Source of the DNA: Lepidodermella squamata
Taxonomy: Eukaryota > Animalia > Gastrotricha
NCBI GenBank assembly: GCA_047495785.1
Contig: JBLDXI010000013.1
Location: forward strand, 1 to 64,000
Reading direction: 5' to 3'
Length of the DNA: 64,000 bases
Shown here: positions 1 through 25,712 of the stretch, one piece after another
How positions within the stretch are numbered: position 1 is the first letter of the stretch
How the letters are laid out: the number at the start of each line of letters is the position of its first letter
The notes under the pieces: model-generated
The model's input: only the letters and a program-made list of their open reading frames with translations
Database searches by the model: none
Told to the model about the DNA's origin: nothing
Program-made: the position numbers and the translations under genes

Positions 1-15
1 ACATCTCGTGAGAGT
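1..15. other. Probable untrimmed PacBio barcode adapter remnant (bc1003-type, lacking first 2 nt)
   Basis: ACATCTCGTGAGAGT at the very start is identical to 1119-1133. As I recall it, it matches PacBio barcode bc1003 ACACATCTCGTGAGAG plus the T overhang. Confidence 0.8.
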
Positions 16-16
16 C

Positions 17-395
17 ATACGGATAAGCAAATGTAACCGAATCAACTAATAAAAGAACGTATTGTAAAGAAATTGTGTGCCTTTTTTATAAGAAAGTAAA
101 CACATTCCATTGTTTTCCAAACAAATTACCTTGGAGACACAGACCCAACATAGCGCGGCAAAACAGAAAAACATAAATATTCAATCGATAGTTCAAAATA
201 TCGATAGTTGGTGCAGGTTTACAATTATTGGATGAGCAAGATACTGGACAAGTTATTAGGGTTGAGAATTGATTCCAGCTTGATGGAAACTTGAATTATT
301 TAATTTGGTCGTAATTCTGAAATTCTACGGTGAATTGGGATTGCAAAACCCACACCTACCCTAAACTAACCCTAACCAGAACCCTGAACCTAACC
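17..395 (+). repeat. Fragment of subtelomeric L unit
   Basis: Near-identical to 16016-16395 (one 1-nt indel). It runs into pure CCCTAA repeats at the degenerate telomere-like segment gaacctaacc. Confidence 0.9.
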
Positions 396-1116
396 CTAAC
401 CCTAACCCTAACCCTAACCCTAACCCTAACCCTAACCCTAACCCTAACCCTAACCCTAACCCTAACCCTAACCCTAACCCTAACCCTAACCCTAACCCTA
501 ACCCCTAACCCTAACCCTAACCCTAACCCTAACCCTAACCCTAACCCTAACCCTAACCCTAACCCTAACCCTAACCCTAACCCTAACCCTAACCTAACCC
601 TAACCCTAACCCTAACCCTAACCCTAACCCTAACCCTAACCCTAACCCTAACCCTAACCCTAACCCTAACCCTAACCCTAACCCTAACCCTAACCCTAAC
701 CCTAACCCTAACCCTAACCCTAACCCTAACCCTAACCCTAACCCTAACCCTAACCCTAACCCTAACCCTAACCCTAACCCTAACCCCTAACCCTAACCCT
801 AACCCTAACCCTAACCCTAACCCTAACCCTAACCCTAACCCTAACCCTAACCCTAACCCTAACCCTAACCCTAACCCTAACCCTAACCCTAACCCTAACC
901 CTAACCCTAACCCTAACCCTAACCCTAACCCTAACCCTAACCCTAACCCTAACCCTAACCCTAACCCTAACCCTAACCCTAACCCTAACCCTAACCCTAA
1001 CCCTAACCCTAACCCTAACCCTAACCCTAACCCTAACCCTAACCCTAACCCTAACCCTAACCCTAACCCTAACCCTAACCCTAACCCTAACCCTAACCCT
1101 AACCCTAACCCTAACC
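387..1116 (+). repeat. Telomeric repeat tract (CCCTAA)n, ~120 units
   Basis: Direct read. A few 1-nt slips occur (CCCCTAA, CCTAA). Confidence 0.99.
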
Positions 1117-1133
1117 ACACATCTCGTGAGAGT
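1117..1133. other. Probable PacBio barcode adapter (bc1003-type) embedded in telomeric tract
   Basis: ACACATCTCGTGAGAGT interrupts the CCCTAA array, and the same sequence is at position 1. Confidence 0.8.
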
Positions 1134-1176
1134 CCTAACCCTAACCCTAACCCTAACCCTAACCCTAACCCAACCC
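1134..1176 (+). repeat. Telomeric cap of PLE copy 1
   Basis: (CCCTAA)n ending in the variant CCCAACCC, directly joined to 5'-truncated element sequence. Confidence 0.95.
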
Positions 1177-1914
1177 GGGAGCATCGATTTAGTCGTCGCC
1201 CCAGCTGCCAGTGTTTCACCGATAGCCAGCGTCTCACATCCCACGGCCGTCGACCTGGATCTTTTTGCAATTCCCGGTACACCCGCACTTACAGAACCAC
1301 CAGTACGTAATGCGGACTTGGAGACAATGGCTAATGAGAACATCGATGTCGACGCACCTGGTACTTCATCCACTCCGATGCTATCTGTCGTACGCGAGGA
1401 TGTCGATATCGATACGCCTGGTACTTCCTTCCCTCCGATGCTAGTTGCTGTAGCAGCTCCAACTCCACAAACCGGCGGCAAGCGCGTGCTGTCGTCTACT
1501 TGCTTCTTTCGTTCGCCAAGTGTGACTTCCTCGGGTCTGGCAAAACGAACCAAGGCTAATGTCACATGTGAATCAGATATCGAAGATGATGACGATTTCT
1601 CCGTCACCTCAACACCGACGACATCCCAAGTTTCGAAGGCCCACAAGGTCAGTGGATCGCTACGTTACGAAGCGGAAAAACGGTTTTGGTTGGAACTCGT
1701 GGCCGATCCGGCTTGGATCGGCAAAGTGTTGTTCGTCAAGCCGGCAAAGGGTGAATTGATTTGTAAAATCAAGAATTGCGGTTTCGGCTGCGTGAAAATA
1801 GGTGGTATGATCGGACACTTCACTGCCACGCATCCCTCAATGGCGCCGACGGCTACACGGCTGGCTGACCTGCGCACAGAGAAAATGGCACTTCACTTAT
1901 CGAAGCTGAAGTAA
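1177..1914 (+). pseudogene. 5'-truncated zinc-finger ORF of PLE copy 1
   Basis: Same translation as the C-terminal part of 7091-8164 (GSIDLVV...LHLSKLK), apart from one A/V change. Confidence 0.85.
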
Positions 1915-2468
1915 CTGAACAATTTCCTGATGTTCTGTTGTCTTTTTTCTTGTTGATGAATGCCTGTAGGCGAGAAATTGTTGAATTGTTGAACGATGAA
2001 CACAGGCTCTGGAATAAAATGAAATGTTGAAACTAGATTTGGCTGTCTTTTGTTATTTACTTGGTGTCAAAAAGAGTCTAAACTTGCTGTCTTATTGAAA
2101 GGTCAAAGCCAGGCAAAACCTTCACAGATGAATTTAAAAAAATCTCTTGTTTCAACGGCGGATCTCAGGAAAGTCGATACTCAGATAAATTAAAAAAGGA
2201 TCACCCTAAAAAACTAATGGGTCAGGATAGTATGAGGCAGCCTGGGAATCATCTCCGTCTGCGTGAAGAGGGAGGGATAATGTCATAGTACTAAACGAGT
2301 ACTCAATACAGCAGGAACACGGGATTGTCAACAAGACATGTGATACTGCCTATTTGGGTCCCTACCCCAACCATATCTACATATAGGGAATGAATACTAA
2401 GATAGCGGAGTAGACAATAGAGATACTGAGGGTAGGATAACGAGACTAAAACCCGAAAATAGGGCAAG

Positions 2469-2703
2469 ATCTATCTCTATCTCTATCCCTATCTCTATCT
2501 CTATCCCTATCCATATCCCTATCCCTATCCCTATCCTTATCCTTATCCCTATCCTCATCCTTATCCTTATCCTTATCCTCATCCTCATCCTTATCCGTAT
2601 CCTTATCCTTATCCCTATCCGTATCCTTATCTCTATCCCTGTCCGTATCCTTATCTCTATCCCTATCCCCATCCTTATCTCTATCCACACCCCTATCCTT
2701 ATC
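2469..2703 (+). repeat. Degenerate hexamer microsatellite (CCCTAT/CTCTAT/CCTTAT) in PLE copy 1
   Basis: Direct read. Equivalent tracts are at ~8719-8935 and ~14093-14333, with different lengths. Confidence 0.95.
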
Positions 2704-2983
2704 TTGATCTATGATAAGGATATGATTAGAGATTGTGGAGATAAGAGGGCGGGAGAGCCGGAGGAAGGGCATATGAGTACATTTAGCATTTATTTCAACT
2801 ACTTCGAAGTTGAAAACCTATTCCGAACTTCATCCCTATTCTGGCTAGGATGACCTTGAAATAGCATGCGGCTATTATTCCCGCCAAAAGCCATGTGCTC
2901 GCCACGTGGCGCAGTAGAAAGACGGTAGCGCTGTTTATAAACGCTGCTCATTCGATTCATTATCTCTACGCTTAACAAATACT

Positions 2984-3054
2984 AGCAACTGAAGTCACTG
3001 ATGAGCCTGTTACCCCCAGGCGAAACCGGTCTGACTACTCACGGGGTTGTTGCT
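2984..3054 (+). ncRNA. Type I hammerhead ribozyme (PLE copy 1)
   Basis: Helix I AGTCA/TGACT, core CTGATGA (2998-3004), helix II GCCTG/CAGGC, GAAA, minimal palindromic helix III ACCGGT, GUC cleavage after 3031. Confidence 0.93.
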
Positions 3055-3140
3055 TTTTCATTCTAGACTGTTTTTTCGAGTATAGCCAGTTATAAATGGC
3101 ATTTTTCCGCATAATTTTAATTGTTTTATTTATAGCTATT

Positions 3141-3418
3141 GCTTCCCTATACGGGTGGCTGCCTTTTATTTTACTTCCCTATATGGGTGGTCATGGCTTG
3201 AACAATTATAGGTTATAACTGGTATTATTTCTTAGATAATTACGTGAAATAATACCGTTATATTATGGTTTTTTTCAAATTGTCCTCTCTATTTTTGCAG
3301 CTATTGCTTCCCTTTATGGGTGGCTGTTTTTAATTTGCTTCCCTGTATGGGTGGCTTTGTCCATTTTACTACCCAGACGGGTGCTAAAATTATTATAAGC
3401 TTCCCTTTATGGGTGGCC
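3141..3418 (+). repeat. Array of ~6 short hairpin motifs (GCTTCCC-N5-GGGTGGC) in PLE
   Basis: Repeated motif gcttccc(tttat/tatac/tgtat)gggtggc. Also present at ~9373-9650 and ~14772-15049. Confidence 0.85.
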
Positions 3419-3666
3419 ATGTCATTTATGCCATGTTCTCACTAGAGGCATGTCGCATTTTTGAGCGCAATTAGCGTCATCTCTACTGTTTTGCTCAATA
3501 ATAACATTGTTATGTTCTCCTTTTTAGAAGAATATTACTGAAAGTAATTACGTCCACAGCGAGATCGACTCTACCAACACCTTTGCCAAAAACTGAGGTA
3601 AATTGTGCCATTCCATTTCATTTTTAGAGATTATTTAACGATAGAGAGGATTTGTGACGTTTTCGT

Positions 3667-3756
3667 CCCTATCCCTATCTCTATCCCTATCTCTATCCCT
3701 ATCCCTATCCCTATCCCTATCTCTATCTCCGTCCCTATCTCTATCTCTATCCCTAT
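3667..3756 (+). repeat. Second (CCCTAT/CTCTAT)n microsatellite in PLE
   Basis: Direct read. Also at ~9899-9988 and ~15297-15387. Confidence 0.95.
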
Positions 3757-4003
3757 TTGTGGATTGATAGTCATTTTCATAATAGGAAAGGGATTTTCCG
3801 CTATTTTTCGAGATTAACTGCGTCTCAAGTAGCATTAGAGCTAACTGCCGGGGTGCTTAGGCTACCTGTCTGGTAATTCTCTCCTAACTAACCCTAACTT
3901 TTGAGCTCGAGTCATGAGTACGATGTGAACGAGATGCGGTTTCTCATCTCGTATTATTTGCGGGTCAAATCTTTTAAACTGTTCAATTTTCATCTTTTGC
4001 CAG

Positions 4004-6964
4004 ATGTCAGAAATGCCCGGTAAGCATAACAACCGCGGTCCCCGAAACTTCGGCCCTAACCAACAGCGCGGCAACTACAACAACAATCGTAACCAACCTT
4101 ACGGCAATAGTAACGGCAATACCAACGGTAACGGTCACGGCAACGTCAACGGCAACAGTCGAGAACGAGCCCCGGTCAACACTCTCAAGGCGAAAATCGA
4201 CGAAGCCTTCCGAATGTACCAACCGAAAGCGGCGCAAAGTGTTGACGCGCTAGATCGTGCAATCGTCATGTTCGGAGCTCTATGGCCTAGAGCCTTTGAA
4301 GTCTTTGATCTATTGTCGGGCTATAAAATCCGATGCGCCAACCTGGGTAAAGACAATGCAGTCGTTCAACAGGTTTGTACTCTAAAACCTAACTGCATTG
4401 ATAATATATCTGTATTTTTCTGATAGGTCGTGATTGCCTTAGTCGATGGAGTCATCAGTGACTATGCCCCTTTGTTAACTGAAGCCATCGACCTGGCTGT
4501 CAAGGTGGCTATGGAGCAAGAGCGATTGAAGTTAACGGCGGCACTGACTAGTCTGGCTGCCAATTTCTTGAACCTCAAGGAGGTGTACGAGACAGCCACC
4601 CAAGGCACACGTTGTTCCCTGGATGACGCCTTGTTGGCAACTTGGCGCGACGCGGACAAACGGTCTGTGGGTCTGACTGCCGACATCAAAATTACTTGGA
4701 CGCCTTGGCCAATGATGGCTACTGCACGTACCATCGGGCGCACGTTGAACACTGAAGGTCTATGTCGCGTTGCGGCATCTGTGTTAAGTCACGACTGGAC
4801 GACCGGAGGGACTGATAAAGAAACGCGCTTCGTCACCTTGCTACGCCTTACGGACGAATTCCTGGCACTCGAGTTGGCCACGAATGGGACCATCGATGGT
4901 CCTCCTACCCAGCCTGGTGCTGCTGGCACGTCCTCAGGTAGGAAAATTAGCGATTCTACTTTTTCCCTAAGTACGAACTGTTTAACATGGGCAGATTTAG
5001 ATTTCTTTAATTGCGAAGCCCTGAAAACCAATTCAAAATTCATTATTGACTTTTTATTTGCACGCCCCAGCGTATGGTACCTAACCTGTAGAATGGAACC
5101 CGGGCATCCAATGCGATGCCTTCGCTCCAATTTTCAAAACAACAAACTTTGGGTTCTTTGTCAGGAACATGCCTCTTGCTTTCACTCTGAAAAACAATTA
5201 TGGTTTCACTTGGAGAATTGCCACCTACAGGATCTCTTTATTATCGAGGACATTCCTCGGCTTACCTCGCATTTATACGGGGTTAACATTTCTCTAATGG
5301 ATAAATTACCAATCCACTCCTCGTCCCAACCAGCTTTGAATTTATCTGAGGACAATAAAAAATGGGAGAAGAAAGGTGTTATTGACCTCACCGGGAAACT
5401 ATCTATCGAGTTAAAAAACCAGCTATCCAAAGGTTTAAAATTTGTTAAACTTACTCGTAGTGATCTCCGTAATTCCATTTTTGAAGCAAAGGAAAAAATC
5501 GATGAACTCAAAGTAAAATTGAGTCGCAAATTGAGAAGAGACCTAAATTTTAAGCTCCGTAATGAGCTATCTAGTCTCAATAATGATATCCCCAACGTAC
5601 CCTCAGATGTCTGGATTACCAAGAGCGATAAGGGCAATGTAGTGGTTGCAATCGCTAAAAATACCTACTGTAAAATGGGTGAGAAATTTCTTAACAATGC
5701 GACTACCTTTCGTAAGACTGAAACTGATGGCTTTACGGAATTCAGAAAATCTATCAATGACCTCAGAACAGAATGGCTAGCCTTCTCCCCTGATACCCTC
5801 AATAAATGGAAAAAAGTCTTTGTCAAATCGAAAAACCTCCGCACGAAATTCATTTACTTTCTTCCAAAACTCCACAAAGCAGCCGATAATGAAAGTCTTC
5901 TGAAAGTAAGACCCATCACCGACGGAACTAATACCTACACCTCTCAAGCTGACAAAGCTCTGTATAAAAAATTACGTAAGGCAAGACTTAGCTTGACAAC
6001 GGTCGTACACAGTAGCACAGAGGTTCTTAGCGAAATTCGGGCCTTGAATGATAGTGGAAAAAACCTGGATGAAGCAATCATCTGCACCGCTGATATCAGC
6101 GACATGTACAACCAAATCCCCCTTTTTGAAGCCGTAGACGGAGTGGCTTCCTACCTCAGAGAGCACGATATCCTAGAACCTGTTGAAAGACGCTTAGTAT
6201 GCAAAGCCATTTACATTGTTTTGAGCTCAAGTTCTGTCAAATTCAATGACAAGTGGTATCGCCAAATTCAGGGTCTAGCTATGGGTGGTCATCTCTCCCC
6301 TTGGGTTGCTAATAATTGGCTCTACATACTTGAACGCAACCTGTGGATAATCCACTCACCCTTAGTAGGCTGTCGGTATCTTGATGACCTATTATCCATT
6401 TTTCTCAACAACCAGCGATCTGCTGAATTCATGAAAGAATACAGCCGTCTGCACCCCAATATAAAATTGGAAATTAACACTTCGGAGCATAGCGCCCAGT
6501 ATTTGGACCTTATCATCTATAAGAAAGATGGTCGTGTAGAAACCGGTGTCTACTTCAAACCAACTGATAGCCTCTCTCTACTGAGCAACGGTTCGGAACA
6601 CCCATCTCACATTTTTTCCGGAGTGATAGAATCACAAATCTTGAGATACTCCCGAATTGCCTCAACTTTCAAAGACTGGGCTATAGCGGTACTCAGCCTA
6701 TGTCATAGCCTCCTGAGAAGGGGATATACATGGACACTTGTGGCATCAACCATCAAGGGCACCTTGAAAAAATTGGAGAATAAGGAATGGCCCTTCATTA
6801 ATAAGAAACTAACAAATAAACCATACGAAACAATGCACGTCCTGCACTACGCAAAATCCCTTGAACCCGTATATAAAACCATTAAAAAACATGGTCGATT
6901 GGCACTTAAGCTGAATAAAAATAATAGAAAGCGTTTCACCAAATCTGAATTTTCAGGAATGTAA
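4004..6964 (+). CDS. PLE reverse transcriptase polyprotein (exons 4004-4372 + 4427-6964, ~968 aa), no GIY-YIG endonuclease
   Basis: PLE RT motifs: KSDKGN, YFLPKLHK, VRPI, TADISDMY, QGLAMGGHLSP, RYLDD, YLDL, VYFKPT, SEHP...SQILRYSRIAS, RGY. A 54-nt GT-AG intron (4373-4426) joins the 139-aa ORF in frame. No GIY-YIG motif is visible at either end. Confidence 0.9.
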
Positions 6965-7127
6965 TGGTTGGTACCCAGCAATGCGAGCCTATTAGCTGGC
7001 AGCCTCAACAACACGCTGATGTGAAATGATGATATTTGACTACAAATAAAAAAGAAAGGGGAATTACCACTGTCTTTTGAATTACTTTGGTTGCTAATCA
7101 TGATCGTAACTTTACTCTTATACTCAG

Positions 7128-8164
7128 ACTGGATCACCGGTAAGGAGTTTAGCTTCGGCCTCGTCATGGACGCCAAGCGATATGCCCCACCGGGTGGTTT
7201 TCGCGCCCCAGTACCATCACCAGTCACCTTCGGTCATCCGACGGTCGTCAGGCGTTCTTCGACGCCTTTGGTCGCACCGCGCCCGGCTGAAACGCCTCTT
7301 GACTCAGATACGGATAGTGACTCATCAGAAGATGCGTTGCTTATGCCTGCCAACTCGGAACAGATCAGTGTTGAACCAGCAGACCTTGATGTCTCTATCC
7401 TGAACCCGCCTTTCGATCAGGCGATCGGGAGCATCGATTTAGTCGTCGCCCCAGCTGCCAGTGTTTCACCGATAGCCAGCGTCTCACATCCCACGGCCGT
7501 CGACCTGGATCTTTTTGCAATTCCCGGTACACCCGCACTTACAGAACCACCAGTACGTAATGCGGACTTGGAGACAATGGCTAATGAGAACATCGATGTC
7601 GACGCACCTGGTACTTCATCCACTCCGATGCTATCTGCCGTACGCGAGGATGTCGATATCGATACGCCTGGTACTTCCTTCCCTCCGATGCTAGTTGCTG
7701 TAGCAGCTCCAACTCCACAAACCGGCGGCAAGCGCGTGCTGTCGTCTACTTGCTTCTTTCGTTCGCCAAGTGTGACTTCCTCGGGTCTGGCAAAACGAAC
7801 CAAGGCTAATGTCACATGTGAATCAGATATCGAAGATGATGACGATTTCTCCGTCACCTCAACACCGACGACATCCCAAGTTTCGAAGGCCCACAAGGTC
7901 AGTGGATCGCTACGTTACGAAGCGGAAAAACGGTTTTGGTTGGAACTCGTGGCCGATCCGGCTTGGATCGGCAAAGTGTTGTTCGTCAAGCCGGCAAAGG
8001 GTGAATTGATTTGTAAAATCAAGAATTGCGGTTTCGGCTGCGTGAAAATAGGTGGTATGATCGGACACTTCACTGCCACGCATCCCTCAATGGCGCCGAC
8101 GGCTACACGGCTGGCTGACCTGCGCACAGAGAAAATGGCACTTCACTTATCGAAGCTGAAGTAA
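7128..8164 (+). CDS. PLE downstream ORF: S/T/P/D-rich linker plus C-terminal C2H2/BED-like zinc finger
   Basis: Open in all copies. CKIKNC-x12-HFTATH (C-x4-C-x12-H-x4-H) at 8012-8083. It is preceded by a splice acceptor at 7126-7127 (alternative start ATG 7166) and followed by AATAAA at ~8263. Confidence 0.75.
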
Positions 8165-9215
8165 CTGAACAATTTCCTGATGTTCTGTTGTCTTTTTTCT
8201 TGTTGATGAATGCCTGTAGGCGAGAAATTGTTGAATTGTTGAACGATGAACACAGGCTCTGGAATAAAATGAAATGTTGAAACTAGATTTGGCTGTCTTT
8301 TGTTATTTACTTGGTGTCAAAAAGAGTCTAAACTTGCTGTCTTATTGAAAGGTCAAAGCCAGGCAAAACCTTCACAGATGAATTTAAAAAAATCTCTTGT
8401 TTCAACGGCGGATCTCAGGAAAGTCGATACTCAGATAAATTAAAAAAGGATCACCCTAAAAAACTAATGGGTCAGGATAGTATGAGGCAGCCTGGGAATC
8501 ATCTCCGTCTGCGTGAAGAGGGAGGGATAATGTCATAGTACTAAACGAGTACTCAATACAGCAGGAACACGGGATTGTCAACAAGACATGTGATACTGCC
8601 TATTTGGGTCCCTACCCCAACCATATCTACATATAGGGAATGAATACTAAGATAGCGGAGTAGACAATAGAGATACTGAGGGTAGGATAACGAGACTAAA
8701 ACCCGAAAATAGGGCAAGATCTATCTCTATCTCTATCCCTATCCATATCCCTATCCCTATCCCTATCCTTATCCTTATCCCTATCCTCATCCTTATCCTT
8801 ATCCTTATCCTCATCCTCATCCTTATCCGTATCCTTATCCTTATCCCTATCCGTATCCTTATCTCTATCCCTGTCCGTATCCTTATCTCTATCCCTATCC
8901 CCATCCTTATCTCTATCCACACCCCTATCCTTATCTTGATCTATGATAAGGATATGATTAGAGATTGTGGAGATAAGAGGGCGGGAGAGCCGGAGGAAGG
9001 GCATATGAGTACATTTAGCATTTATTTCAACTACTTCGAAGTTGAAAACCTATTCCGAACTTCATCCCTATTCTGGCTAGGATGACCTTGAAATAGCATG
9101 CGGCTATTATTCCCGCCAAAAGCCATGTGCTCGCCACGTGGCGCAGTAGAAAGACGGTAGCGCTGTTTATAAACGCTGCTCATTCGATTCATTATCTCTA
9201 CGCTTAACAAATACT

Positions 9216-9286
9216 AGCAACTGAAGTCACTGATGAGCCTGTTACCCCCAGGCGAAACCGGTCTGACTACTCACGGGGTTGTTGCT
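9216..9286 (+). ncRNA. Type I hammerhead ribozyme (PLE copy 2)
   Basis: Identical to 2984-3054. Predicted cleavage after 9263. Confidence 0.93.
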
Positions 9287-10119
9287 TTTTCATTCTAGAC
9301 TGTTTTTTCGAGTATAGCCAGTTATAAATGGCATTTTTCCGCATAATTTTAATTGTTTTATTTATAGCTATTGCTTCCCTATACGGGTGGCTGCCTTTTA
9401 TTTTACTTCCCTATATGGGTGGTCATGGCTTGAACAATTATAGGTTATAACTGGTATTATTTCTTAGATAATTACGTGAAATAATACCGTTATATTATGG
9501 TTTTTTTCAAATTGTCCTCTCTATTTTTGCAGCTATTGCTTCCCTTTATGGGTGGCTGTTTTTAATTTGCTTCCCTGTATGGGTGGCTTTGTCCATTTTA
9601 CTACCCAGACGGGTGCTAAAATTATTATAAGCTTCCCTTTATGGGTGGCCATGTCATTTATGCCATGTTCTCACTAGAGGCATGTCGCATTTTTGAGCGC
9701 AATTAGCGTCATCTCTACTGTTTTGCTCAATAATAACATTGTTATGTTCTCCTTTTTAGAAGAATATTACTGAAAGTAATTACGTCCACAGCGAGATCGA
9801 CTCTACCAACACCTTTGCCAAAAACTGAGGTAAATTGTGCCATTCCATTTCATTTTTAGAGATTATTTAACGATAGAGAGGATTTGTGACGTTTTCGTCC
9901 CTATCCCTATCTCTATCCCTATCTCTATCCCTATCCCTATCCCTATCCCTATCTCTATCTCCGTCCCTATCTCTATCTCTATCCCTATTTGTGGATTGAT
10001 AGTCATTTTCATAATAGGAAAGGGATTTTCCGCTATTTTTCGAGATTAACTGCGTCTCAAGTAGCATTAGAGCTAACTGCCGGGGTGCTTAGGCTACCTG
10101 TCTGGTAATTCTCTCCTAA

Positions 10120-10197
10120 CTAACCCTAACCCTAACCCTAACCCTAACCCTAACCCTAACCCTAACCCTAACCCTAACCCTAACCCTAACCCACCCC
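10120..10197 (+). repeat. Interstitial telomeric tract between PLE copies 2 and 3
   Basis: (CCCTAA)~12 ending CCCACCCC. Confidence 0.97.
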
Positions 10198-12339
10198 ACG
10201 CGCTTCGTTACCTTGCTACGCCTTACGGACGAATTCCTGGCACTCGAGTTGGCCACGAATGGGACCATCGATGGTCCTCCTACCCAGCCTGGTGCTGCTG
10301 GCACGTCCTCAGGTAGGAAAATTAGCGATTCTACTTTTTCCCTAAGTACGAACTGTTTAACATGGGCAGATTTAGATTTCTTTAATTGCGAAGCCCTGAA
10401 AACCAATTCAAAATTCATTATTGACTTTTTATTTGCACGCCCCAGCGTATGGTACCTAACCTGTAGAATGGAACCCGGGCATCCAATGCGATGCCTTCGC
10501 TCCAATTTTCAAAACAACAAACTTTGGGTTCTTTGTCAGGAACATGCCTCTTGCTTTCACTCTGAAAAACAATTATGGTTTCACTTGGAGAATTGCCACC
10601 TACAGGATCTCTTTATTATCGAGGACATTCCTCGGCTTACCTCGCATTTATACGGGGTTAACATTTCTCTAATGGATAAATTACCAATCCACTCCTCGTC
10701 CCAACCAGCTTTGAATTTATCTGAGGACAATAAAAAATGGGAGAAGAAAGGTGTTATTGACCTCACCGGGAAACTATCTATCGAGTTAAAAAACCAGCTA
10801 TCCAAAGGTTTAAAATTTGTTAAACTTACTCGTAGTGATCTCCGTAATTCCATTTTTGAAGCAAAGGAAAAAATCGATGAACTCAAAGTAAAATTGAGTC
10901 GCAAATTGAGAAGAGACCTAAATTTAAAGCTCCGTAATGAGCTATCTAGTCTCAATAATGATATCCCCAACGTACCCTCAGATGTCTGGATTACCAAGAG
11001 CGATAAGGGCAATGTAGTGGTTGCAATCGCTAAAAATACCTACTGTAAAATGGGTGAGAAATTTCTTAACAATGCGACTACCTTTCGTAAGACTGAAACT
11101 GATGGCTTTACGGAATTCAGAAAATCTATCAATGACCTTAGAACAGAATGGCTAGCCTTCTCCCCTGATACCCTCAATAAATGGAAAAAAGTCTTTGTCA
11201 AATCGAAAAACCTCCGCACGAAATTCATTTACTTTCTTCCAAAACTCCACAAAGCAGCCGATGATGAAAGTCTTCTGAAAGTAAGACCCATCACCGACGG
11301 AACTAATACCTACACCTCTCAAGCTGACAAAACTCTGTATAAAAAATTACGTAAGGCAAGACTTAGCTTGACAACGGTCGTACACAGTAGCACAGAGGTT
11401 CTTAGCGAAATTCGGGCCTTGAATGATAGTGGAAAAAACCTGGATGAAGCAATCATCTGCACCGCTGATATCAGCGACATGTACAACCAAATCCCCCTTT
11501 TTGAAGCCGTAGACGGAGTGGCTTCCTACCTCAGAGAGCACGATATCCTAGAACCTGTTGAAAGACGCTTAGTATGCAAAGCCATTTACATTGTTTTGAG
11601 CTCAAGTTCTGTCAAATTCAATGACAAGTGGTATCGCCAAATTCAGGGTCTAGCTATGGGTGGTCATCTCTCCCCTTGGGTTGCTAATAATTGGCTCTAC
11701 ATACTTGAACGCAACCTGTGGATAATCCACTCACCCTTAGTAGGCTGTCGGTATCTTGATGACCTATTATCCATTTTTCTCAACAACCAGCGATCTGCTG
11801 AATTCATGAAAGAATACAGCCGTCTGCACCCCAATATAAAATTGGAAATTAACACTTCGGAGCATAGCGCCCAGTATTTGGACCTTATCATCTATAAGAA
11901 AGATGGTCGTGTAGAAACCGGTGTCTACTTCAAACCAACTGATAGCCTCTCTCTACTGAGCAACGGTTCGGAACACCCATCTCACATTTTTTCCGGAGTG
12001 ATAGAATCACAAATCTTGAGATACTCCCGAATTGCCTCAACTTTCAAAGACTGGGCTATAGCGGTACTCAGCCTATGTCATAGCCTCCTGAGAAGGGGAT
12101 ATACATGGACACTTGTGGCATCAACCATCAAGGGCACCTTGAAAAAATTGGAGAATAAGGAATGGCCCTTCATTAATAAGAAACTAACAAATAAACCATA
12201 CGAAACAATGCACGTCCTGCACTACGCAAAATCCCTTGAACCCGTATATAAAACCATTAAAAAACATGGTCGATTGGCACTTAAGCTGAATAAAAATAAT
12301 AGAAAGCGTTTCACCAAATCTGAATTTTCAGGAATGTAA
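10198..12339 (+). CDS. PLE RT, copy 3 (N-terminally truncated, RT domain uninterrupted)
   Basis: 708-aa ORF that differs from copy 2 at only about three residues. Confidence 0.85.
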   Translation, partial: TRFVTLLRLTDEFLALELATNGTIDGPPTQPGAAGTSSGRKISDSTFSLSTNCLTWADLDFFNCEALKTNSKFIIDFLFARPSVWYLTCRMEPGHPMRCLRSNFQNNKLWVLCQEHASCFHSEKQLWFHLENCHLQDLFIIEDIPRLTSHLYGVNISLMDKLPIHSSSQPALNLSEDNKKWEKKGVIDLTGKLSIELKNQLSKGLKFVKLTRSDLRNSIFEAKEKIDELKVKLSRKLRRDLNLKLRNELSSLNNDIPNVPSDVWITKSDKGNVVVAIAKNTYCKMGEKFLNNATTFRKTETDGFTEFRKSINDLRTEWLAFSPDTLNKWKKVFVKSKNLRTKFIYFLPKLHKAADDESLLKVRPITDGTNTYTSQADKTLYKKLRKARLSLTTVVHSSTEVLSEIRALNDSGKNLDEAIICTADISDMYNQIPLFEAVDGVASYLREHDILEPVERRLVCKAIYIVLSSSSVKFNDKWYRQIQGLAMGGHLSPWVANNWLYILERNLWIIHSPLVGCRYLDDLLSIFLNNQRSAEFMKEYSRLHPNIKLEINTSEHSAQYLDLIIYKKDGRVETGVYFKPTDSLSLLSNGSEHPSHIFSGVIESQILRYSRIASTFKDWAIAVLSLCHSLLRRGYTWTLVASTIKGTLKKLENKEWPFINKKLTNKPYETMHVLHYAKSLEPVYKTIKKHGRLALKLNKNNRKRFTKSEFSGM

Positions 12340-12502
12340 TGGTTGGTACCCAGCAATGCGAGCCTATTAGCTGGCAGCCTCAACAACACGCTGATGTGAA
12401 ATGATGATATTTGACTACAAATAAAAGAGAAAGGGGAATTACCACTGTCTTTTGAATTACTTTGGTTGCTAATCATGATCGTAACTTTACTCTTATACTC
12501 AG

Positions 12503-13539
12503 ACTGGATCACCGGTAAGGAGTTTAGCTTCGGCCTCGTCATGGACGCCAAGCGATATGCCCCACCGGGTGGTTTTCGCGCCCCAGTACCATCACCAGTC
12601 ACCTTCGGTCATCCGACGGTCGTCAGGCGTTCTTCGACGCCTTTGGTCGCACCGCGCCCGGCTGAAACGCCTCTTGACTCAGATACGGATAGTGACTCAT
12701 CAGAAGATGCGTTGCTTATGCCTGCCAACTCGGAACAGATCAGTGTTGAACCAGCAGACCTTGATGTCTCTATCCTGAACCCGCCTTTCGATCAGGCGAT
12801 CGGGAGCATCGATTTAGTCGTCGCCCCAGCTGCCAGTGTTTCACCGATAGCCAGCGTCTCACATCCCACGGCCGTCGACCTGGATCTTTTTGCAATTCCC
12901 GGTACACCCGCACTTACAGAACCACCAGTACGTAATGCGGACTTGGAGACAATGGCTAATGAGAACATCGATGTCGACGCACCTGGTACTTCATCCACTC
13001 CGATGCTATCTGCCGTACGCGAGGATGTCGATATCGATACGCCTGGTACTTCCTTCCCTCCGATGCTAGTTGCTGTAGCAGCTCCAACTCCACAAACCGG
13101 CGGCAAGCGCGTGCTGTCGTCTACTTGCTTCTTTCGTTCGCCAAGTGTGACTTCCTCGGGTCTGGCAAAACGAACCAAGGCTAATGTCACATGTGAATCA
13201 GATGTCGAAGATGATGACGATTTCTCCGTCACCTCAACACCGACGACATCCCAAGTTTCGAAGGCCCACAAGGTCAGTGGATCGCTACGTTACGAAGCGG
13301 AAAAACGGTTTTGGTTGGAACTCGTGGCCGATCCGGCTTGGATCGGCAAAGTGTTGTTCGTCAAGCCGGCAAAGGGTGAATTGATTTGTAAAATCAAGAA
13401 TTGCGGTTTCGGCTGCGTGAAAATAGGTGGTATGATCGGACACTTCACTGCCACGCATCCCTCAATGGCGCCGACGGCTACACGGCTGGCTGACCTGCGC
13501 ACAGAGAAAATGGCACTTCACTTATCGAAGCTGAAGTAA
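12503..13539 (+). CDS. PLE zinc-finger ORF, copy 3
   Basis: Same as 7128-8164 with one I/V change. Confidence 0.75.
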
Positions 13540-14614
13540 CTGAACAATTTCCTGATGTTTTGTTGTCTTTTTTCTTGTTGATGAATGCCTGTAGGCGAGA
13601 AATTGTTGAATTGTTGAACGATGAACACAGGCTCTGGAATAAAATGAAATGTTGAAACTAGATTTGGCTGTCTTTTGTTTTTTACTTGGTGTCAAAAAGA
13701 GTCTAAACTTGCTGTCTTATTGAAAGGTCAAAGCCAGGCAAAACCTTCACAGATGAATTAAAAAAATCTCTTGTTTCAACGGCGGATCTCAGGAAAGTCG
13801 ATACTCAGATAAATTAAAAAAGGATCACCCTAAAAAACTAATGGGTCAGGATAGTATGAGGCAGCATGGGAATCATCTCCGTCTGCGTGAAGAGGGAGGG
13901 ATAATGTCATAGTACTAAACGAGTACTCAATACAGCAGGAACACGGGATTGTCAACAAGACATATGATACTGCCTATTTGGGTCCCTACCCCAACCATAT
14001 CTACATATAGGGAATGAATACTAAGATAGCGGAGTAGACAATAGAGATACTGAGGGTAGGATAACGAGACTAAAACCCGGAGATAGGGCAAGATCTATCT
14101 CTATCTCTATCCCTATCTCTATCTCTATCCCTATCCATATCCCTATCCCTATCCTTATCCTTATCCCTATCCTTATCCTTATCCTTATCCTTATCCCTAT
14201 CCCTATCCGTATCCTTATCCTTATCCTTATCCCTATCCCTATCCCTATCCGTATCCGTATCTCTATCCCTATCCCTATCCCTATCCCTATCCCTATCCCT
14301 ATCCTTATCTCTATCCACACCCCTATCCTTATCTTGATCTATGATAAGAATATGATTAGAGATTGTGGAGATAAGAGGGCGGGAGAGCCGGAGGAAGGGC
14401 ATATGAGTACATTTGGCATTTATTTCAACTACTTCGAAGTTGGAAAACCTATTCCGAACTTCATCCCTATTCTGGCTAGGATGACCTTGAAATAGCATGC
14501 GGCTATTATTCCCGCCAAAAGCCATGTGCTCGCCACGTGGCGCAGTAGAAAGACGGTAGCGCTGTTTATAAACGCTGCTCATTCGATTCATTATCTCTAC
14601 GCTTAACAAATACT

Positions 14615-14685
14615 AGCAACTGAAGTCACTGATGAGCCTGTTACCCCCAGGCGAAACCGGTCTGACTATTCACGGGGTTGTTGCT
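14615..14685 (+). ncRNA. Type I hammerhead ribozyme (PLE copy 3)
   Basis: Same core and helices as the other copies. Predicted cleavage after 14662. Confidence 0.93.
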
Positions 14686-15518
14686 TTTTCATTCTAGACT
14701 GTTTTTTCGAGTATAGCCAGTTATAAATGGCATTTTTCCGCATAATTTTAATTGTTTTATTTATAGCTATTGCTTCCCTATACGGGTGGCTGCCTTTTAT
14801 TTTACTTCCCTATATGGGTGGTCATGGCTTGAACAATTATAGGTTATAACTGGTATTATTTCTTAGATAATTACGTGAAATAATACCGTTATATTATGGT
14901 TTTTTTCAAATTGTCCTCTCTATTTTTGCAGCTATTGCTTCCCTTTATGGGTGGCTGTTTTTGATTTGCTTCCCTGTAAGGGTGGCCTTGTCCATTTTAC
15001 TACCCAGACGGGTGCTAAAATTATTATAAGCTTCCCTTTATGGGTGGCTATGTCATTTATGCCATGTTCTCACTAGAGGCATGTCGCATTTTTGAGCGCA
15101 ATTAGCGTCATCTCTACTGTTTTGCTCAATAATAACATTGTTATGTTCTCCTTTTTAGAAGAATATTACTGAAAGTAATTACGTCCACAGCGAGATCGAC
15201 TCTACCAACACCTTTGCCAAAAACTGAGGTAAATTGTGCCTTTCCATTTCATTTTTAGAGATTATTTAACGATAGAGAGGATTTGTGACGTTTTCGTCCC
15301 TATCCCTATCTCTATCCCTATCCCTATCTCTATCCCTATCCCTATCCCTATCTCTATCTCCATCCCTATCTCTATCTCTATCCCTATTTGTGGATTGATA
15401 GTCATTTTCATAATAGGAAAGGGATTTTCCGCTATTTTTCGAGATTAACTGCGTCTCAAGTAGCATTAGAGCTAACTGCCGGGGTGCTTAGGCTACCTGT
15501 CTGGTAATTCTCTCCTAA

Positions 15519-15710
15519 CTAACCCTAACCCTAACCCTAACCCAACCCACACTAACCCTAACCCTAACCCTAACCCTAACCCTAACCCTAACCCTAACCC
15601 TAACCCTAACCCTAACCCTAACCCTAACCCTAACCCTAACCCTAACCCTAACCCTAACCCAACCCTAACCCCCTAACCCTAACCCTAACCCTAACCCTAA
15701 CCCTAACCCC
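15519..15710 (+). repeat. Interstitial telomeric tract with variant units
   Basis: (CCCTAA)n with CCCAA, CCCACACTAA and CCCCCTAA variants. Confidence 0.97.
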
Positions 15711-16659
15711 AATCTTGAAACACATCATCAAAAAACACCCGGGCAACACTAGTAACGCTGAATCCATGTGTGCAAATTACTTCAGAGCCTTCAACATTCA
15801 ATCATTCGGCTGGTTGGATATAGCTGATTTGTTAGCCAGGTACCCTCTGCGTAAAAAATGATGACAGGGAAAATAACTGTTTACCACCGTGTACCATTTA
15901 TCAACCGTTTCAAATTATGTTCCTAACTAAATGTATGCATATTGTTGGCTCTTGGAAAGACAAAATAAAGGAAGAACTTGTTGATTTTATCAGTTGTTAA
16001 ACATTTTTACTGCGGATACGGATAAGCAAATGTAACCGAATCAACTAATAAAAGAACGTATTGTAAAGAAATTGTGTGCCTTTTTTATAAGAAAGTAAAC
16101 ACATTCCATTGTTTTCCAAACAAATTACCTTGGAGACACAGACCCAACATAGCGCGGCAAAACAGAAAAACATAAATATTCAATCGATAGTTCAAAATAT
16201 CGATAGTTGGTGCAGGTTTACAATTATTGGATGAGCAAGATACTGGACAAGTTATTAGGGTTGAGAATTGATTCCAGCTTGATGGAAACTTGAATTATTT
16301 AATTTGGTCGTAATTTCTGAAATTCTACGGTGAATTGGGATTGCAAAACCCACACCTACCCTAAACTAACCCTAACCAGAACCCTGAACCTAACCGAAAC
16401 CAGAACCTTCCTGAACGGAAGGCTAGTCGCCTAAATCGCCGTATTGGGATTGCGAAACCCACACCTACCCTGAACTAACCCTAACCAGAACCCTGAAACT
16501 AACCTTAACCAGTTCCCTCCTGAACTGAAGGTTGATCGGAAGTTTCCTGAGCTGCAGGCTAAACGGAACCCTCCTGAAGCGAAAGCCTGGACATGATCCT
16601 GATCACGTATTTGTGCTTTGAGAACATGAATGCGGACATTTCATACTCTGTAAAATCTA

Positions 16660-19600
16660 GTTTGCCCTTCGAATTTCATGTCAACTTGATAGATTCTCAG
16701 CCAATTTCAGAATTATTCACAGGCATAGTGTTATAAGGTCTCCAGATGACGAATAGGTCGCCTAAAACCATGTACGGTTAACGGTAAAAGCTCCAAATAG
16801 GTTCAAGATGACCTATTTTGAGTTTGAGATATTCACTTTTGGCATTTCAAAATAATTCATAATTTCTCGGATCTTCAGTCAATTGGCGATTAAGCGCATG
16901 GAAATAGTATTATCGGGTCCGCTGATGGCGGAAATGTGGTCGAAAATCATGTTTGGTCAACGGAAAAGGTTCCAGATCGATTCCAGATGACCTTATTTAA
17001 TTTTAAGAATTTCACCTTTGGTACTGCCAAAGAAATTCATATTTATTCGGATCTTGGGTGAATTTTCTAGCGTTGGAATGGAAATCATATTTTCGGATCC
17101 GCCGATCAAGATAATGTGGTCAAAACCCTTGCACGGTGAACAGAAAAGGTTTCAGATCGATTCCAAGTGTGCTATTTTGAGATCCTAAAATTGACTTTTG
17201 GCATTTCAAATAATTTCATAATTTTTCGGATCATCATGCATTTCTTGATTAAACTGTTGGACATGGCGTTATCGAGTCCGCTTAACGCGGGGATGTGGTC
17301 AGTGGATATGTTCGGCCAATGACAAAGGTTCCAGATCGATTCCAAGTGACCTACTTCAGTTTTCAGATTTTCACTTTCGGATTTTATAAAAATATTGATT
17401 ATCCCTCGGATCTTCAGGCGGTTGTCGATTAATCAAATAAGCATCATCGGGTCCACCAACAACGATTGTGGGGTTGAGACCATGCACTGGTAACGTAAAA
17501 GGTTCCAGCGAGGTACCAATTGACCTTTGTGAGTAATGTAGAAGCCATGTTTGGCTTTTCAAATTTCATCTCAACATGACGAATCCTAAGCCAATTTGTG
17601 AATTATTTACAGGAATCGTGCTATCAGGTCCGCTGATGGCGATTACGTGGTTGAAAACCATGTACGGTGAAGGGAAAAGGTTCCAGATCGTTCAAAAATG
17701 ACCCATTTTGAGTTCGATCTGGTCACGGTTGACGTTTCAAATTTCATCTAAACTTACCGGATTCGGAGCCAATTGGTGAAATATTGACAGGAATAGTACT
17801 TTCAAGACAGCTGATGACGAATATCAAGTCGAAAAACACACCCGATTCGAGATAAAGGTTCCAGATCGATCCCAAATGACATACTTTAAGTTGGAAATTA
17901 TCACTTTTGGACTATTTGGACCTTTCAAAATAGTCAGGGATTTCTCGGATTCCCATGCTTTTGCCGATTAAATACATGGAATTGGTACTTTCAGGGCTCC
18001 TGAGCACGAATATGATGCCAGATTCGCGAGGGAATCTCGGAAAAAGGTTCCAGGTCGTTTCCAAATGACCTAGTTTGAACTTGATGTTTTGTAATTAAGC
18101 ATTTCGAAATTATTCATGAATTCTCGGATCTTGAGGGGATTTTCGGCTATTGGAATGAAATAGTACTATCGGGTCAACCGATCATGAATGTGTCGTCCAA
18201 ACCTTGGTACGGTGAACAAAAAAAGGTTCCAGAACGATTCCAAGTGACCCACTTCGGGCTTCAAATGTTCACTTTTGGCATCTTAAAATAATTCATTATT
18301 CCTCGAATTTTCTGGCACTGGTCGATTAATCGCATGGAAATAGTATTATCGGGTCCGCTAATGACGATTACGTGGTTGAAAACCATGTACGGTGAAGGGA
18401 AAAGGTTCCAGATCGGTTCCAGATGGCCTATTTTGAGATCGACCTGGTCACGGTTGACCTTTCAAATTTCATCTATACTTCCCGGATTCTTGGTCACTTC
18501 GTGAATAAATCGCGGGAATAGTAATGTCAGGTCCGCCGATAAAGAATATCAAATCGGATTAAGAAGGCTGTCTACCATAAAGGTTCCAGAGCGAATCGAA
18601 ATCACCTATTTTGAAGTTGAAAATAATTTGTTACCTTTCAGTTTTGATTTTAACTTGACGGATCCTGAGCCATTTGGTGAGAAATTTACGGGAATAGCAC
18701 AATCAGGTCCGCTGATGAGGAATATCAAGTCGAAAAACACACCCGATTCGCGATAAAAGATCCAGATCGATCCCAAATGACCTACTTGGATTTTTAAATT
18801 TTCATGTTTGACCTTTCAAATGGGTTGTTAAATTGTCGGATTCTTCGCCAATTTGTGAATAATTTACAGGAATCATGATATGAGGTCCGCTGATGACGAT
18901 AACGTGGTTGAAAACCGTGTACGGTGAAGGGAAAAGGTTCCAGACCGATCCCAAATGACCTACTTTGACTTTTAAATTTTCATGATTGACCTTTCAAATT
19001 TGATCTTAACTTATCGGATTCTCGGCCAGTTTGTGAATAATTTACAGGAATCGTGCTATCAGGTCCGCTGATGGCGATTACGTGGTTGAAAACCATGTAC
19101 GGTGAAGGGAAAAGGTTCCAGATCGTTCAAAAATGACCCATTTTGAGTTCGATCTGGTCACCGTTGACGTTTCAAATTTCATCTAAACTTACCGGATTCA
19201 GAACCAATTGGTGAAATATTTATGGGAATAGTACTTTCGAGTCAGCTGATGACGAATATCAGGTCGGATCAAGACGGCTGTCGACAATAAAGGTTCCGGA
19301 GCGAACTAAAATCATCGATTTCGAAATTGGGATTTTCACTTTTGGCATTTCAAAATAATTCATAACTTCTCGGATCTTCAGTCAATTGCCGATTAATCGC
19401 ATGGAAATAGCAATATCGGGTCCGCTGATGACGGAAATATGGTTGAAAACCATGTACGGTGAAGGGAAAAGGTTCCAGATCGGTTCCAGATGACCTACTT
19501 TGAGATTTTAAAATTTCACTTCGTCCGGTTCAAATTCTTCAACAATTCCGGTGATCCTGAGTTAACTGTTGATTAAACACAAAGAATAAGTAAAATAGGG

Positions 19601-23700: not shown

Positions 23701-25712
23701 GAGCCATTTGGTGAAAAATTGACGGGAATAGCACAATCAGGTCCGCTGATGAGGAATATCAAGTCGGAAAACACACCCGATTCGAGATAAAAGATCCAGA
23801 TCGATCCCAAATGACCTACTTTGACTTTTAAATTTTCATGTTTGACCTTTCAAACGGGTCGTTAAATTGTCGGATTCTTCGCCAATTTGTGAATAATTTA
23901 CAGGAATCATGATATGAGGACCGCTGATGACGATAACGTGGTTGAAAACCATGTACGGTGAAGGGAAAAGGTTCCAGACCGATCCCAAATGACCTACTTT
24001 GACTTTTAAATTTTCATGATTGACCTTTCAAATTTGATCTTAACTTATCGGATTCTCGGCCAGTTTGTGAATAATTTACAGGAATCATGCTATCAGGTCC
24101 GCTGATGGCGATTACGTGGTTGAAAACCATGTACGGTGAAGGGAAAAGGTTCCAGATCGTTCCAAAATGACCCATTTTGAGTTCGATCTGGTCACGGTTG
24201 ACCTTTCAAATTTCATCTAAACTTACCGGATTCAGAGCCAATTGGTGAAATATTGACAGGAATAGTACTATCAAGTCAGCTGATGACGAATATCAAGTTG
24301 AATCAAGACGGCTGTCGATAATAAAGGTTCCGGAGCGAACTAAAATCATCTATTTCGAAATTGAGATTTTCACTTTTGGCATTTCAAAATAATTCATATT
24401 TTCTCGGATCTTCAGTCAGCTGCAGATTAATCGCATGGAATTAGTATTATCGGGTCCGCTGATGGTGGAAATGTGGTCGAAAATCATGTACGGTGAAGGG
24501 AAAAGGTTCCAGATCGGTTCCAAATGACCTACTTTGAAATTTAAAATGTCACTTATGGAGGTTCAAATTCTTCAACAATTCCGTTGATCCTGAGTTAACT
24601 ATTGATTAAACACAAAGAATAAGTAAAATGGGGTCCGCTGATTGCGGAAATCATATCCAAAACGAGGTACGTCTAATATTGAGGGTTCCAGATTTATTTA
24701 ACGTGACCTGTTGGGTCATAATTTTGTGAAATTACTTGCTCATTTATTTCGCTTGTTAAGTTTTCATTCCCGCTGAATACGATTGGCATAACGATGAGGT
24801 GCACCTTCAGGGGATGCATCTGCACTTGTCAGTTTTGCCCGCTTCTTGTGTTCATGCTGTAATTTGCATTTTAATTTCCAAAAATATCTTGGAAATAATT
24901 TTTTATGTGCTTTAGTTTGCACGTGACTTGAGCTTGGAATCTTATTTCATTCATAAAGAACGACTCGCTAATTAAATACAACGCATGAATAAGATCCATG
25001 TGACTTGACTTGGCACGACGATTGGCAAAATCTGGCGAGAAAATAATTTACGCAGCCATTCAATCAAAGAAGCTTATAAAAGTCTTTCTCGAAGACTGTA
25101 AAATTATCAATCGCTCTTCAACAGCACTATCTGTTAAACTTTGTTTTCAACATATAGTAAGTTTGAGGACACTAGTGTAAAACCCTTCATAACTTTTGCT
25201 TCAACGTTTGACGAATATTGAAGTAATTTGAAGTAATTTTTTCAAAGTTATGAAACTGTTCCAAGGCAGTAGACTTATGTTGAAATGTTTACAATTTATT
25301 TATTTCTAATTCTATCCTTTGTAATTTCCCTGACTCCCCTGGGTCATGGTGAAATATTAATAATTTGCCTGACTCCCCTGGGTCATGGTAAAATAAATAA
25401 TTTGCCTGACTCCCCTGGGTCATGGTAAAATAAGATCAAACAGAAAATGACTCCTCTGGGTCATTCTTCTGATTGAATTGTATTCATTCTTTGAATACAA
25501 ATTTTGAGCCATTTGTCGGGAATTTTTTATCGGATCTCAGTATTATCGCGGAGTGGTTAGGAACACATAATTTTTGTGATGAAGAATTATCACAAACATA
25601 AAAATGATGCTCATCTTGGATCCCTATGATGGAGTAATGGTAGGGCCCGGTTTGACTCTCGGTAAAACGAGAGGCCCCGGTTTGCAGCTCGTCTGTATTA
25701 AACTATTACCAA
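20722..25712 (+). mobile_element. Subtelomeric L unit 2
   Basis: Diverged paralog of L1 with ~18 monomers. It ends ...ctattaccaaTAACCCTAAC followed by telomeric repeats. Confidence 0.6.

Follow-up and report, generated by a model that had tools for sequence, protein, structure and literature searches.

How does a retroelement that lacks an endonuclease come to be stacked, copy after copy, between telomeric repeats? The question is raised by one end of contig JBLDXI010000013.1 (here C13, 4.73 Mb) of the gastrotrich Lepidodermella squamata (assembly GCA_047495785.1, 121 Mb in 151 contigs). The first 64 kb of this contig, referred to here as the window, carry at 1176-15529 three + strand direct copies of a 6.2 kb retroelement, as established by repeat finding and pairwise alignment. 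We call this Penelope-like element (PLE) the C13 PLE and its copies, from the contig end inwards, A, B and C. Endonuclease-free PLEs are regarded as similar to the forerunners of telomerase, and their animal records comprise bdelloid rotifers and one shrimp element. The analysis presented here indicates that C13 PLE is probably an autonomous endonuclease-free PLE resident at chromosome ends, one that uses the telomeric overhang as primer and acts in alternation with telomerase. The anatomy of the three copies and of the tracts between them, including the reverse transcriptase (RT) gene, a second open reading frame (ORF2) and the 3′ untranslated region (UTR), is as follows.

394-1176, + strand: telomeric tract of about 130 repeats, with the C-strand on the + strand, capping the truncation of copy A.
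1177-3898, + strand: copy A, 5′-truncated, equivalent to 7426-10130 of B, with part of ORF2 and the whole 3′ UTR.
2982-3055, + strand: hammerhead ribozyme of copy A, of the same sequence as in B.
3899-10130, + strand: copy B, the sole full-length unit, 6232 nt, joined to A without extra bases.
4004-4372, + strand: RT exon 1, 123 codons, ATG at 4004, with a homologous exon in the relatives C57a and C57b.
4373-4426, + strand: predicted 54-nt intron (GT..AG, phase 0) containing an in-frame stop.
4427-6964, + strand: RT exon 2, with N-terminal helical region, DKG, RT motifs, thumb and tail, and no endonuclease.
4937-7128, + strand: candidate alternative intron spanning the RT, proposed from conserved donor, acceptor and phase.
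7091-8164, + strand: ORF2, 357 aa, first ATG at 7100, with a C-terminal helix, a single C2H2-type finger and a second helix.
8721-8935, + strand: about 36 (CCCTAT)-type hexamers, with a second array at 9898-9988.
9214-9287, + strand: type I hammerhead of copy B, with predicted cleavage after C9263.
10055-10130, + strand: 3′-terminal 76 nt, common to non-coding ‘mini’ elements (98.7% identity).
10131-10197, + strand: telomeric tract between B and C, ending in the irregular CCCACCCC.
10198-15529, + strand: copy C, 5′-truncated, RT domain open, starting at the equivalent of 4823 in B, 99.3% identity.
14613-14686, + strand: hammerhead of copy C, with one base unlike B.
15530-15712, + strand: telomeric tract proximal to copy C.

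All three copies finish in the shared 3′ terminus TCTCTCCTAACTAACCCTAAC, at 3898, 10130 and 15529 in A, B and C respectively, and the last 15 nt of the unit (10116-10130 in B) are the telomere complement CTAACTAACCCTAAC. A is preceded by approximately 0.8 kb of (CCCTAA)n, the junction reading ...CCCTAACCCAACC|CGGGAGC, while C is preceded by (CCCTAA)11 and the irregular CCCACCCC. These 5′ junctions (CCCAACC, CCCACCCC) are not flush in-register repeats, a feature that fits the new addition of repeats to a non-telomeric end, and no target-site duplication is visible. The same-orientation copies with identical 3′ ends and the telomere-capped 5′ truncations of A and C agree with the initial annotation of this locus, as does the polarity that it had likened to that of endonuclease-deficient telomeric PLEs, in which the sense strand is 5′-distal and 3′-proximal with the telomere complement at its 3′ end. 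The same polarity runs through the neighbouring sequence, where eight of eight telomeric tracts within 1-36.4 kb, including five further ones at 25716, 26759, 31457, 32500 and 36264, carry the C-strand on the + strand, and (TTAGGG)2 is absent from the + strand; the chance expectation for a telomeric 18-mer is 0.

Comparison of the copies shows a single mismatch and one 18-nt indel in the hexamer array between A and B over 2705 nt, and 37 mismatches between C and the corresponding 4823-10130 of B over 5308 nt, the proximal C being more diverged from B than is the distal A. The first 531 nt of B are found nowhere else in the assembly, which makes B the only full-length copy. Its 5′ end (TTTTGAGCTCGAG...) stands directly on the last base of A (3898|3899) with zero bases between them, and this seamless joint, together with the near-identity of the two copies, suggests that A and B are probably one complementary DNA (cDNA) of 1.44 units, in a partial tandem, pseudo-long-terminal-repeat-like arrangement that recurs among the relatives of the element. 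As B is not capped by telomeric repeats, the three copies first annotated are all present, but they probably record two events and not three.

The absence of an endonuclease was established at several levels. No GIY-YIG domain was found in 1-16500 by Pfam at E≤0.1, none of the 21 genome-wide hits to PF01541 falls within C13:1-16000, and a PLE-specific GIY-YIG hidden Markov model (HMM) run on the six frames of 1-16500 reached 0.9 bits at best, in comparison with 36-47 bits for the endonuclease-bearing PLEs of the same genome, which served as positive control. The annotated lack of GIY-YIG thus holds under the profile search that had been suggested for it. A HMMER search with the RT retrieved 10303 relatives, among which matches at approximately E 1e-35 carry a C-terminal GIY-YIG, identifying the protein, from its sequence, as a PLE RT homologous to RT+GIY-YIG proteins. 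A GIY-YIG profile built from these relatives marks 84 of 166 proteins and leaves the query and its 26 closest relatives unmarked. These 27 form a clade (SH-like approximate likelihood ratio test (SH-aLRT) 100 in one tree; ultrafast bootstrap 90 and SH-aLRT 98 in another), all of whose proteins are without endonuclease and end 52-123 aa past the region that matches the query RT. With the whole clade lacking the domain, the loss is old and not a recent decay within an endonuclease-bearing family. The clade consists of three family groups of the L. squamata genome and unnamed metagenome or run-assembly sequences; the trees, which took in the query and its database relatives, place it among PLE RTs. 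A word-indexed protein search gave one match for the RT and one for the clade profile, and the feature-based Atlas neighbours, which provide merely a lead, are commonest in Rotifera.

Canonical RT+GIY-YIG PLEs are also found in this genome, at C24:4309548-4310960, C48:312964-315344, C13:1.59 Mb and C15:4.45 Mb. They have a different, minimal type of hammerhead, and one pair is arranged head to head.

The RT itself appears intact, as first annotated. Its reading frame is open in B (844 aa) and in C (708 aa, shorter because of the 5′ truncation), and presents, in the motif nomenclature of PMC13159263, ...TKSDKGNVVV..., FYFLPKLHK, ADISDMY, QGLAMGGHLSP and RYLDD followed by the thumb, with the DKN-type motif that characterizes PLEs lying upstream of RT1. 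Across 24 members of the clade D400, K401 and the catalytic D555, D652 and D653 vary hardly or not at all, while between families dN is 0.34-0.51 and dS is saturated, pointing to long-term constraint on the RT. Pfam returned for the element proteins just a sub-threshold RVT_1, and a sequence search of solved structures gave weak matches to group II intron and retron RTs. The structure model, with predicted local distance difference test scores (pLDDT) >90 over most of residues 200-840 and a helical N-terminal region of low confidence, has TERT as all of its 13 best PDB fold matches (E 2e-9 to 1e-7), with RTs of R2, group II introns, defence systems and LINE-1 ranking lower. The tail of exon 2 extends approximately 54 aa beyond the region matching other RTs. 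Rooting the RT tree on the TERT exon of this same genome placed the root among endonuclease-free lineages, a placement that is unreliable given the single exon and a branch of 4.9.

The short intron at 4373-4426 is predicted from sequence and has a counterpart in C57b, where a 58-nt GT..AG intron occupies the same codon position, while in C57a it is precisely absent; the shared position and the precise loss are as expected for a real intron in a retroelement. The element displays the RT group, DKN motif, hammerhead, retained intron and partial tandem of PLEs, together with the absent endonuclease, 3′ telomere complement, distal 5′ end and capped truncations of the endonuclease-deficient telomeric kind. 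In ORF2 the pattern C-x4-C...H-F-x3-H is invariant in six sequences, including two on contigs assembled from other samples, and both the N-terminal stretch and the C-terminal helix-finger-helix are conserved; the finger domain gave a confident model with no significant match in the PDB.

The genome-wide mapping shows that 19 of the 26 RT copies of the endonuclease-free clade lie ≤35 kb from a contig end, a zone covering 8.7% of the genome (P ~3e-15); counted by locus, 7 of 13 are terminal (P ~4e-5). The related copies are gathered at seven contig ends, and in 16 of the 19 terminal copies the 5′ end points outward, in agreement with the initial annotation. The close families (59-100% identity), on C13, C57, C9 and C20, are all terminal, within 32 kb of the ends. 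The 3′ ends of the C13 PLE family itself were found only at C13, C14, C15 and C32, all ≤16 kb from the contig end and in the expected orientation, bar one inverted copy at the end of C32; on C15 they include a truncated 530-nt copy 4.3 kb from the end. In the C57 stack a 5′-truncated relative is capped by a telomere tract of 109 nt, and in relatives from other samples (L012, L080, L074-77) the sense strand has (CCCTAA)n a short way downstream. A related metagenome element has a tandem unit of 8045 nt that contains a telomere-like tract. C32 terminates in the inverted copy, and C21 likewise in an inverted one.

The genome also encodes TERT, at C21:877.7-881.1 kb, recognizable by TEN (weak), RBD (59 bits) and RT pieces. 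Its presence makes the alternation with telomerase put forward in the initial annotation plausible, while the alternation itself, like a current activity of the family, is something we infer. The model in which an endonuclease-free PLE anneals to the overhang, its RT extends the end and telomerase re-caps the product has been proposed for endonuclease-free PLEs (PMC8557442, PMC13159263), and the present data fit it. Applied to C13 PLE, the RNA tail CUAACUAACCCUAAC would base-pair with the G-rich 3′ overhang, (TTAGGG)n, of a telomere lacking its cap, and the TERT-like RT of the element would extend the DNA end by copying the RNA outward. Early stops in copying would produce the variable 5′ truncations, telomerase would add TTAGGG to the new end to give the (CCCTAA)n caps with their irregular first repeats, and the next element would attach to the new telomere. 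The order of events at the C13 end would then have been X (another telomere-attached, non-coding element, at 15.7 kb), C, a short telomerase tract, B running into A, approximately 0.8 kb of telomere, and X again.

A+B may have been copied from a tandem or read-through transcript, from two RNAs linked by a template jump, or from a circular RNA processed by the hammerhead. Every copy has a type I hammerhead with the invariant CUGAUGAG and CGAAAC cores, a GUC site and helix III ACCGGU, whose predicted cleavage after C9263 would fall 867 nt upstream of the 3′ end of the unit. Across nine variants, from the L. squamata genome and one other sample, 81 of 81 base-pair cells are paired and six of the nine hammerhead pairs carry compensatory changes, a result that no shuffle reached; in the pseudoknot between loop II and helix I the letters change and the pairing is kept in every variant. 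Rfam returned nothing over 1-37000 at E≤1 and, on a 2-kb slice, Hammerhead_3 at 17 bits, below threshold, so that the ribozyme is established by motif search and covariation. No second motif of the form CUGAUGA...GAAA was seen in the last 140 nt, leaving one hammerhead per unit. A short palindromic helix III is the metazoan form, thought to act as a dimer (PMC4209133), and such a hammerhead would process multimeric transcripts. The (CCCTAT)-type arrays upstream and downstream of it, found in the same places in A and C, differ from the telomeric C-strand by one base and have the same orientation; their cDNA strand would read (ATAGGG)n.

A non-coding ‘mini’ unit of 1605 bp with a hammerhead shares its last 65-76 nt with C13 PLE (98% identity) and is found ten-fold in tandem at the end of C32 (C32:4488097-4503781) and once at the start of C14 (C14:1-976). 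In the C32 array extended telomere repeats follow only the innermost unit, a pattern suggesting that products longer than one unit are usual for the C13 PLE family. The RT of C13 PLE probably also mobilizes these non-coding elements through the shared last 76 nt.

The RT-coding segment may in addition be optional within the transcript. The donor CAG|GTAGGA (4937|4938) shows no base change among families whose proteins share just 57-60% identity. The candidate acceptor in C13 PLE is ...TACTCAG| (7127|7128); in every family a pyrimidine-rich acceptor immediately precedes the point where the conserved part of ORF2 begins, with phase 1 kept. This conservation of donor, acceptors and phase suggests that the RT segment may be an alternative intron, in which case splicing at 4937|7128 would remove the RT and fuse the N-terminal region to the ORF2 zinc finger. 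A bolder view, which we put forward tentatively and consider rather doubtful as a whole, is that C13 PLE and its relatives represent an undescribed deep lineage of endonuclease-free PLEs in non-rotifer TTAGGG animals, with RT-skipping splicing, an over-unit and possibly circular template, and mobilized retrozyme-like arrays. One transcript of such an element could yield either an N-terminal-domain-RT protein or an N-terminal-domain-zinc-finger (Gag-like) protein, and rolling-circle reverse transcription of hammerhead-processed circular RNA onto the chromosome end would be possible. Were this correct, these elements would be a routine co-builder of chromosome ends beside telomerase.

Several observations weigh against an exclusively terminal, overhang-primed life for C13 PLE and its clade. 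Three of the terminal copies are inverted, and six loci of more distant families of the clade are internal, with no telomere repeats within 1.5 kb, so that the restriction to ends is not absolute across the whole clade. The assembly contains one full-length copy. The tandem duplication of a 5741-bp block proximal to the three copies indicates that recombination or multi-unit copying also shapes the C13 subtelomere. The 3′-terminal 121 nt fold no better than shuffled sequences (z = -0.36), which leaves the idea of a stem before the template unsupported. The contig that bridges the A/B joint in a public run reaches just 30 nt into A and combines variants of the B type with variants of the C type, and the run may be the assembly's own source. 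Contig C13 ends before the physical chromosome end, and the transcript with its splicing, its ribozyme cleavage and its 3′ terminus is predicted from the genomic sequence. The internal loci lie at C19:237 kb, C26:100-105 kb, C4:684 kb, C29:2.95 Mb, C3:3.27 Mb and C54:2.95 Mb; old fusions, captured fragments or another priming route are possibilities for their origin. The mixed public-run contig, which aligns to 3869-8700, has the unique 5′ region of B but C variants from 5551 on, and is either a graph path that switches copies or another full-length copy missing from the assembly.

These points bear on three other ways in which the stack might have formed. Insertion at nicks or through a nuclease acting in trans, with existing double-stranded (TTAGGG)n arrays, telomeric or interstitial, as the target and in the manner of the silkworm elements TRAS and SART, would likewise fix the orientation of the copies with respect to the repeat strand; a nuclease could come from the genome's own endonuclease-bearing PLEs, and some members of the clade are internal. 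The irregular 5′ junctions are not however those of in-register insertion, there is no visible target-site duplication, the close-family copies all lie ≤32 kb from contig ends, and the internal copies examined have no adjoining telomere repeats. A whole clade without endonuclease fits a long-standing nuclease-independent habit, and we regard array insertion as an unlikely origin of the stack.

Subtelomeric recombination, by unequal crossing-over, break-induced replication or copying of the kind known from alternative lengthening of telomeres, could have multiplied an element that arrived once and is now passive. The duplicated 5741-bp block with two telomere tracts, at approximately 99.8% identity, the near-identity of A and B, and the inverted fragments at some contig ends are all in its favour. 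Recombination would however have copied the junctions along with the element, whereas A and C have different break points and their own tracts of different length behind identical 3′ ends. C has moved 0.7% away from B with its reading frames open, and 3′ ends of the family stand at four contig ends, with related families at more. We therefore judge a chiefly recombinational origin of the copies to be quite improbable, and prefer repeated overhang-primed attachment of C13 PLE.

That the tandem structure is an assembly artefact, a repeat collapse or mis-join at a contig end built from few reads, is very hard to credit: the untrimmed adapter-like 17-mer at the contig end and the inverted copies that finish C32 and C21 could be explained in this way, but 34-37 defined positions separate C from A and B, so that the copies are not one collapsed repeat, the A/B joint (30 nt of it in A) and the passage from the 3′ terminus into telomeric repeats are both present in public-run contigs, and other contigs as well as unrelated samples show this architecture again.

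The remainder of the C13 end, on either side of the three copies, is made up of the following.

1-17, no strand: adapter- or barcode-like 17-mer ACACATCTCGTGAGAGT, technical and not biological.
18-393, + strand: 3′ part of element X, matching 16017-16385, its tail (358-393) degenerate and telomere-like.
15713-36363, + strand: remainder of the stack, with X (15713-16385), other non-coding units, satellites and five telomeric tracts.

The 17-mer, which we take to resemble a PacBio barcode, is present in full or shortened form at the start or end of 14 of the 19 contig ends read (13 of 18 besides the C13 start), and is followed by unrelated sequence at ends of C9, C20, C54, C46, C4, C29, C10, C7, C14, C32, C57, C15 and C21. 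If it is an untrimmed adapter or barcode, those contig ends are read ends and not chromosome ends. The fragment of X at 18-393 runs straight into the perfect (CCCTAA)n that caps A, X recurring at 15713-16385, and with the 17-mer it shows that the chromosome does not physically end where the contig starts. Deeper in the stack, the duplicated block occupies 21058-27078 and 26799-32819, with 13 mismatches in 6 kb. Units of 178 bp containing CUGAUGA...GAAA on the + strand, at 17795-19478, 22826-23977, 28567-29718 and 35033-35280, are candidate satellites that may bear hammerheads and be retrozyme-like. Another non-coding unit has a hammerhead at 26341-26416 and 32082-32157 with the same core and palindromic helix III as C13 PLE; the letters of its helix II and pseudoknot differ but compensate, and a telomeric tract lies approximately 340 nt downstream. 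Genes start only past about 39 kb of the window. Among them is a single-exon FoxC/crocodile-like forkhead gene (44719-46128) that has only one near-full-length database relative, 52% identical, which suggests a sparsely sampled host lineage.

With TTAGGG telomeres, an apparently complete TERT and diverged families of the element at many contig ends, L. squamata offers a tractable second animal system. It would allow tests of RT priming on the overhang, of coexistence with telomerase, and of multimeric or circular ribozyme-processed templates. There is also a consequence for annotation, in that such subtelomeres are easily mistaken for interstitial telomere repeats or misassemblies.

The telomeric lifestyle proposed for C13 PLE is already known from Athena/Terminon, Coprina and the shrimp element, an endonuclease-free PLE reported in kuruma shrimp. 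In Athena/Terminon and Coprina the 5′ end is likewise distal and the 3′ end proximal with a telomere complement (PMC6431247, PMC8557442, PMC13159263). C13 PLE shares with Athena/Terminon of bdelloid rotifers the lack of an endonuclease, an animal host and 3′ reverse-complement telomeric repeats, as well as capped 5′ truncations, head-to-tail arrays at ends, introns, more than one ORF and a hammerhead (PMC6431247, PMC8557442). The Athena/Terminon RT lies deep, near the TERT root, and that of C13 PLE does likewise only on the unreliable rooting described above. In contrast to Athena, whose bdelloid hosts have the telomere TGTGGG (PMC7943196), the host of C13 PLE has TTAGGG. The hammerhead of C13 PLE lies well upstream of the telomere complement, whereas in Athena/Terminon the two are adjacent (PMC6431247). 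The RT ORF of C13 PLE comes first and the zinc-finger ORF follows, unlike the order in Athena/Terminon, and the 6.2 kb unit is not a giant multi-gene element like Terminon. Among the 26 closest relatives of the RT there are no annotated rotifer proteins, all coming from short metagenome or run-assembly contigs.

Coprina, of fungi, a diatom and Selaginella, resembles C13 PLE in lacking an endonuclease and in having TTAGGG-type telomeres with telomeric repeats on both sides, and priming on unprotected telomeres followed by telomerase addition has been proposed for it (PMC13159263). It typically has one ORF (PMC13159263), in contrast to the two conserved ORFs of C13 PLE. In fungal and protist PLEs helix III of the hammerhead is long and the ribozyme works as a monomer (PMC4209133), whereas that of C13 PLE has the short palindrome. 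Compared by their described features, C13 PLE differs from both Athena and Coprina in architecture. The Drosophila elements HeT-A, TART and TAHRE present the same head-to-tail arrays at ends, with the 3′ end centromere-ward and variable 5′ truncation, but they have a long interspersed nuclear element (LINE)-like RT and poly(A) tails, and Drosophila has neither telomerase nor telomerase repeats between the elements, in contrast to the TERT gene and intervening telomere tracts seen here.

The mini tandem at the end of C32, with the same hammerhead core and 3′ terminus as C13 PLE, is comparable to non-LTR (long terminal repeat) retrozymes. A 2026 preprint derives retrozymes from PLEs, endonuclease-free PLEs lying outside its analysis (10.64898/2026.07.22.740005). 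Unlike retrozymes, the mini element has a partner without endonuclease, and its array is anchored on telomeric repeats where contig C32 ends. What C13 PLE adds to the known systems is thus a TTAGGG animal host, a clade made up of unannotated sequences only and an RT-first order with a downstream zinc-finger ORF, to which its sequence further adds a probable alternative intron, an internal predicted hammerhead and a putative telomere-anchored, retrozyme-like partner.

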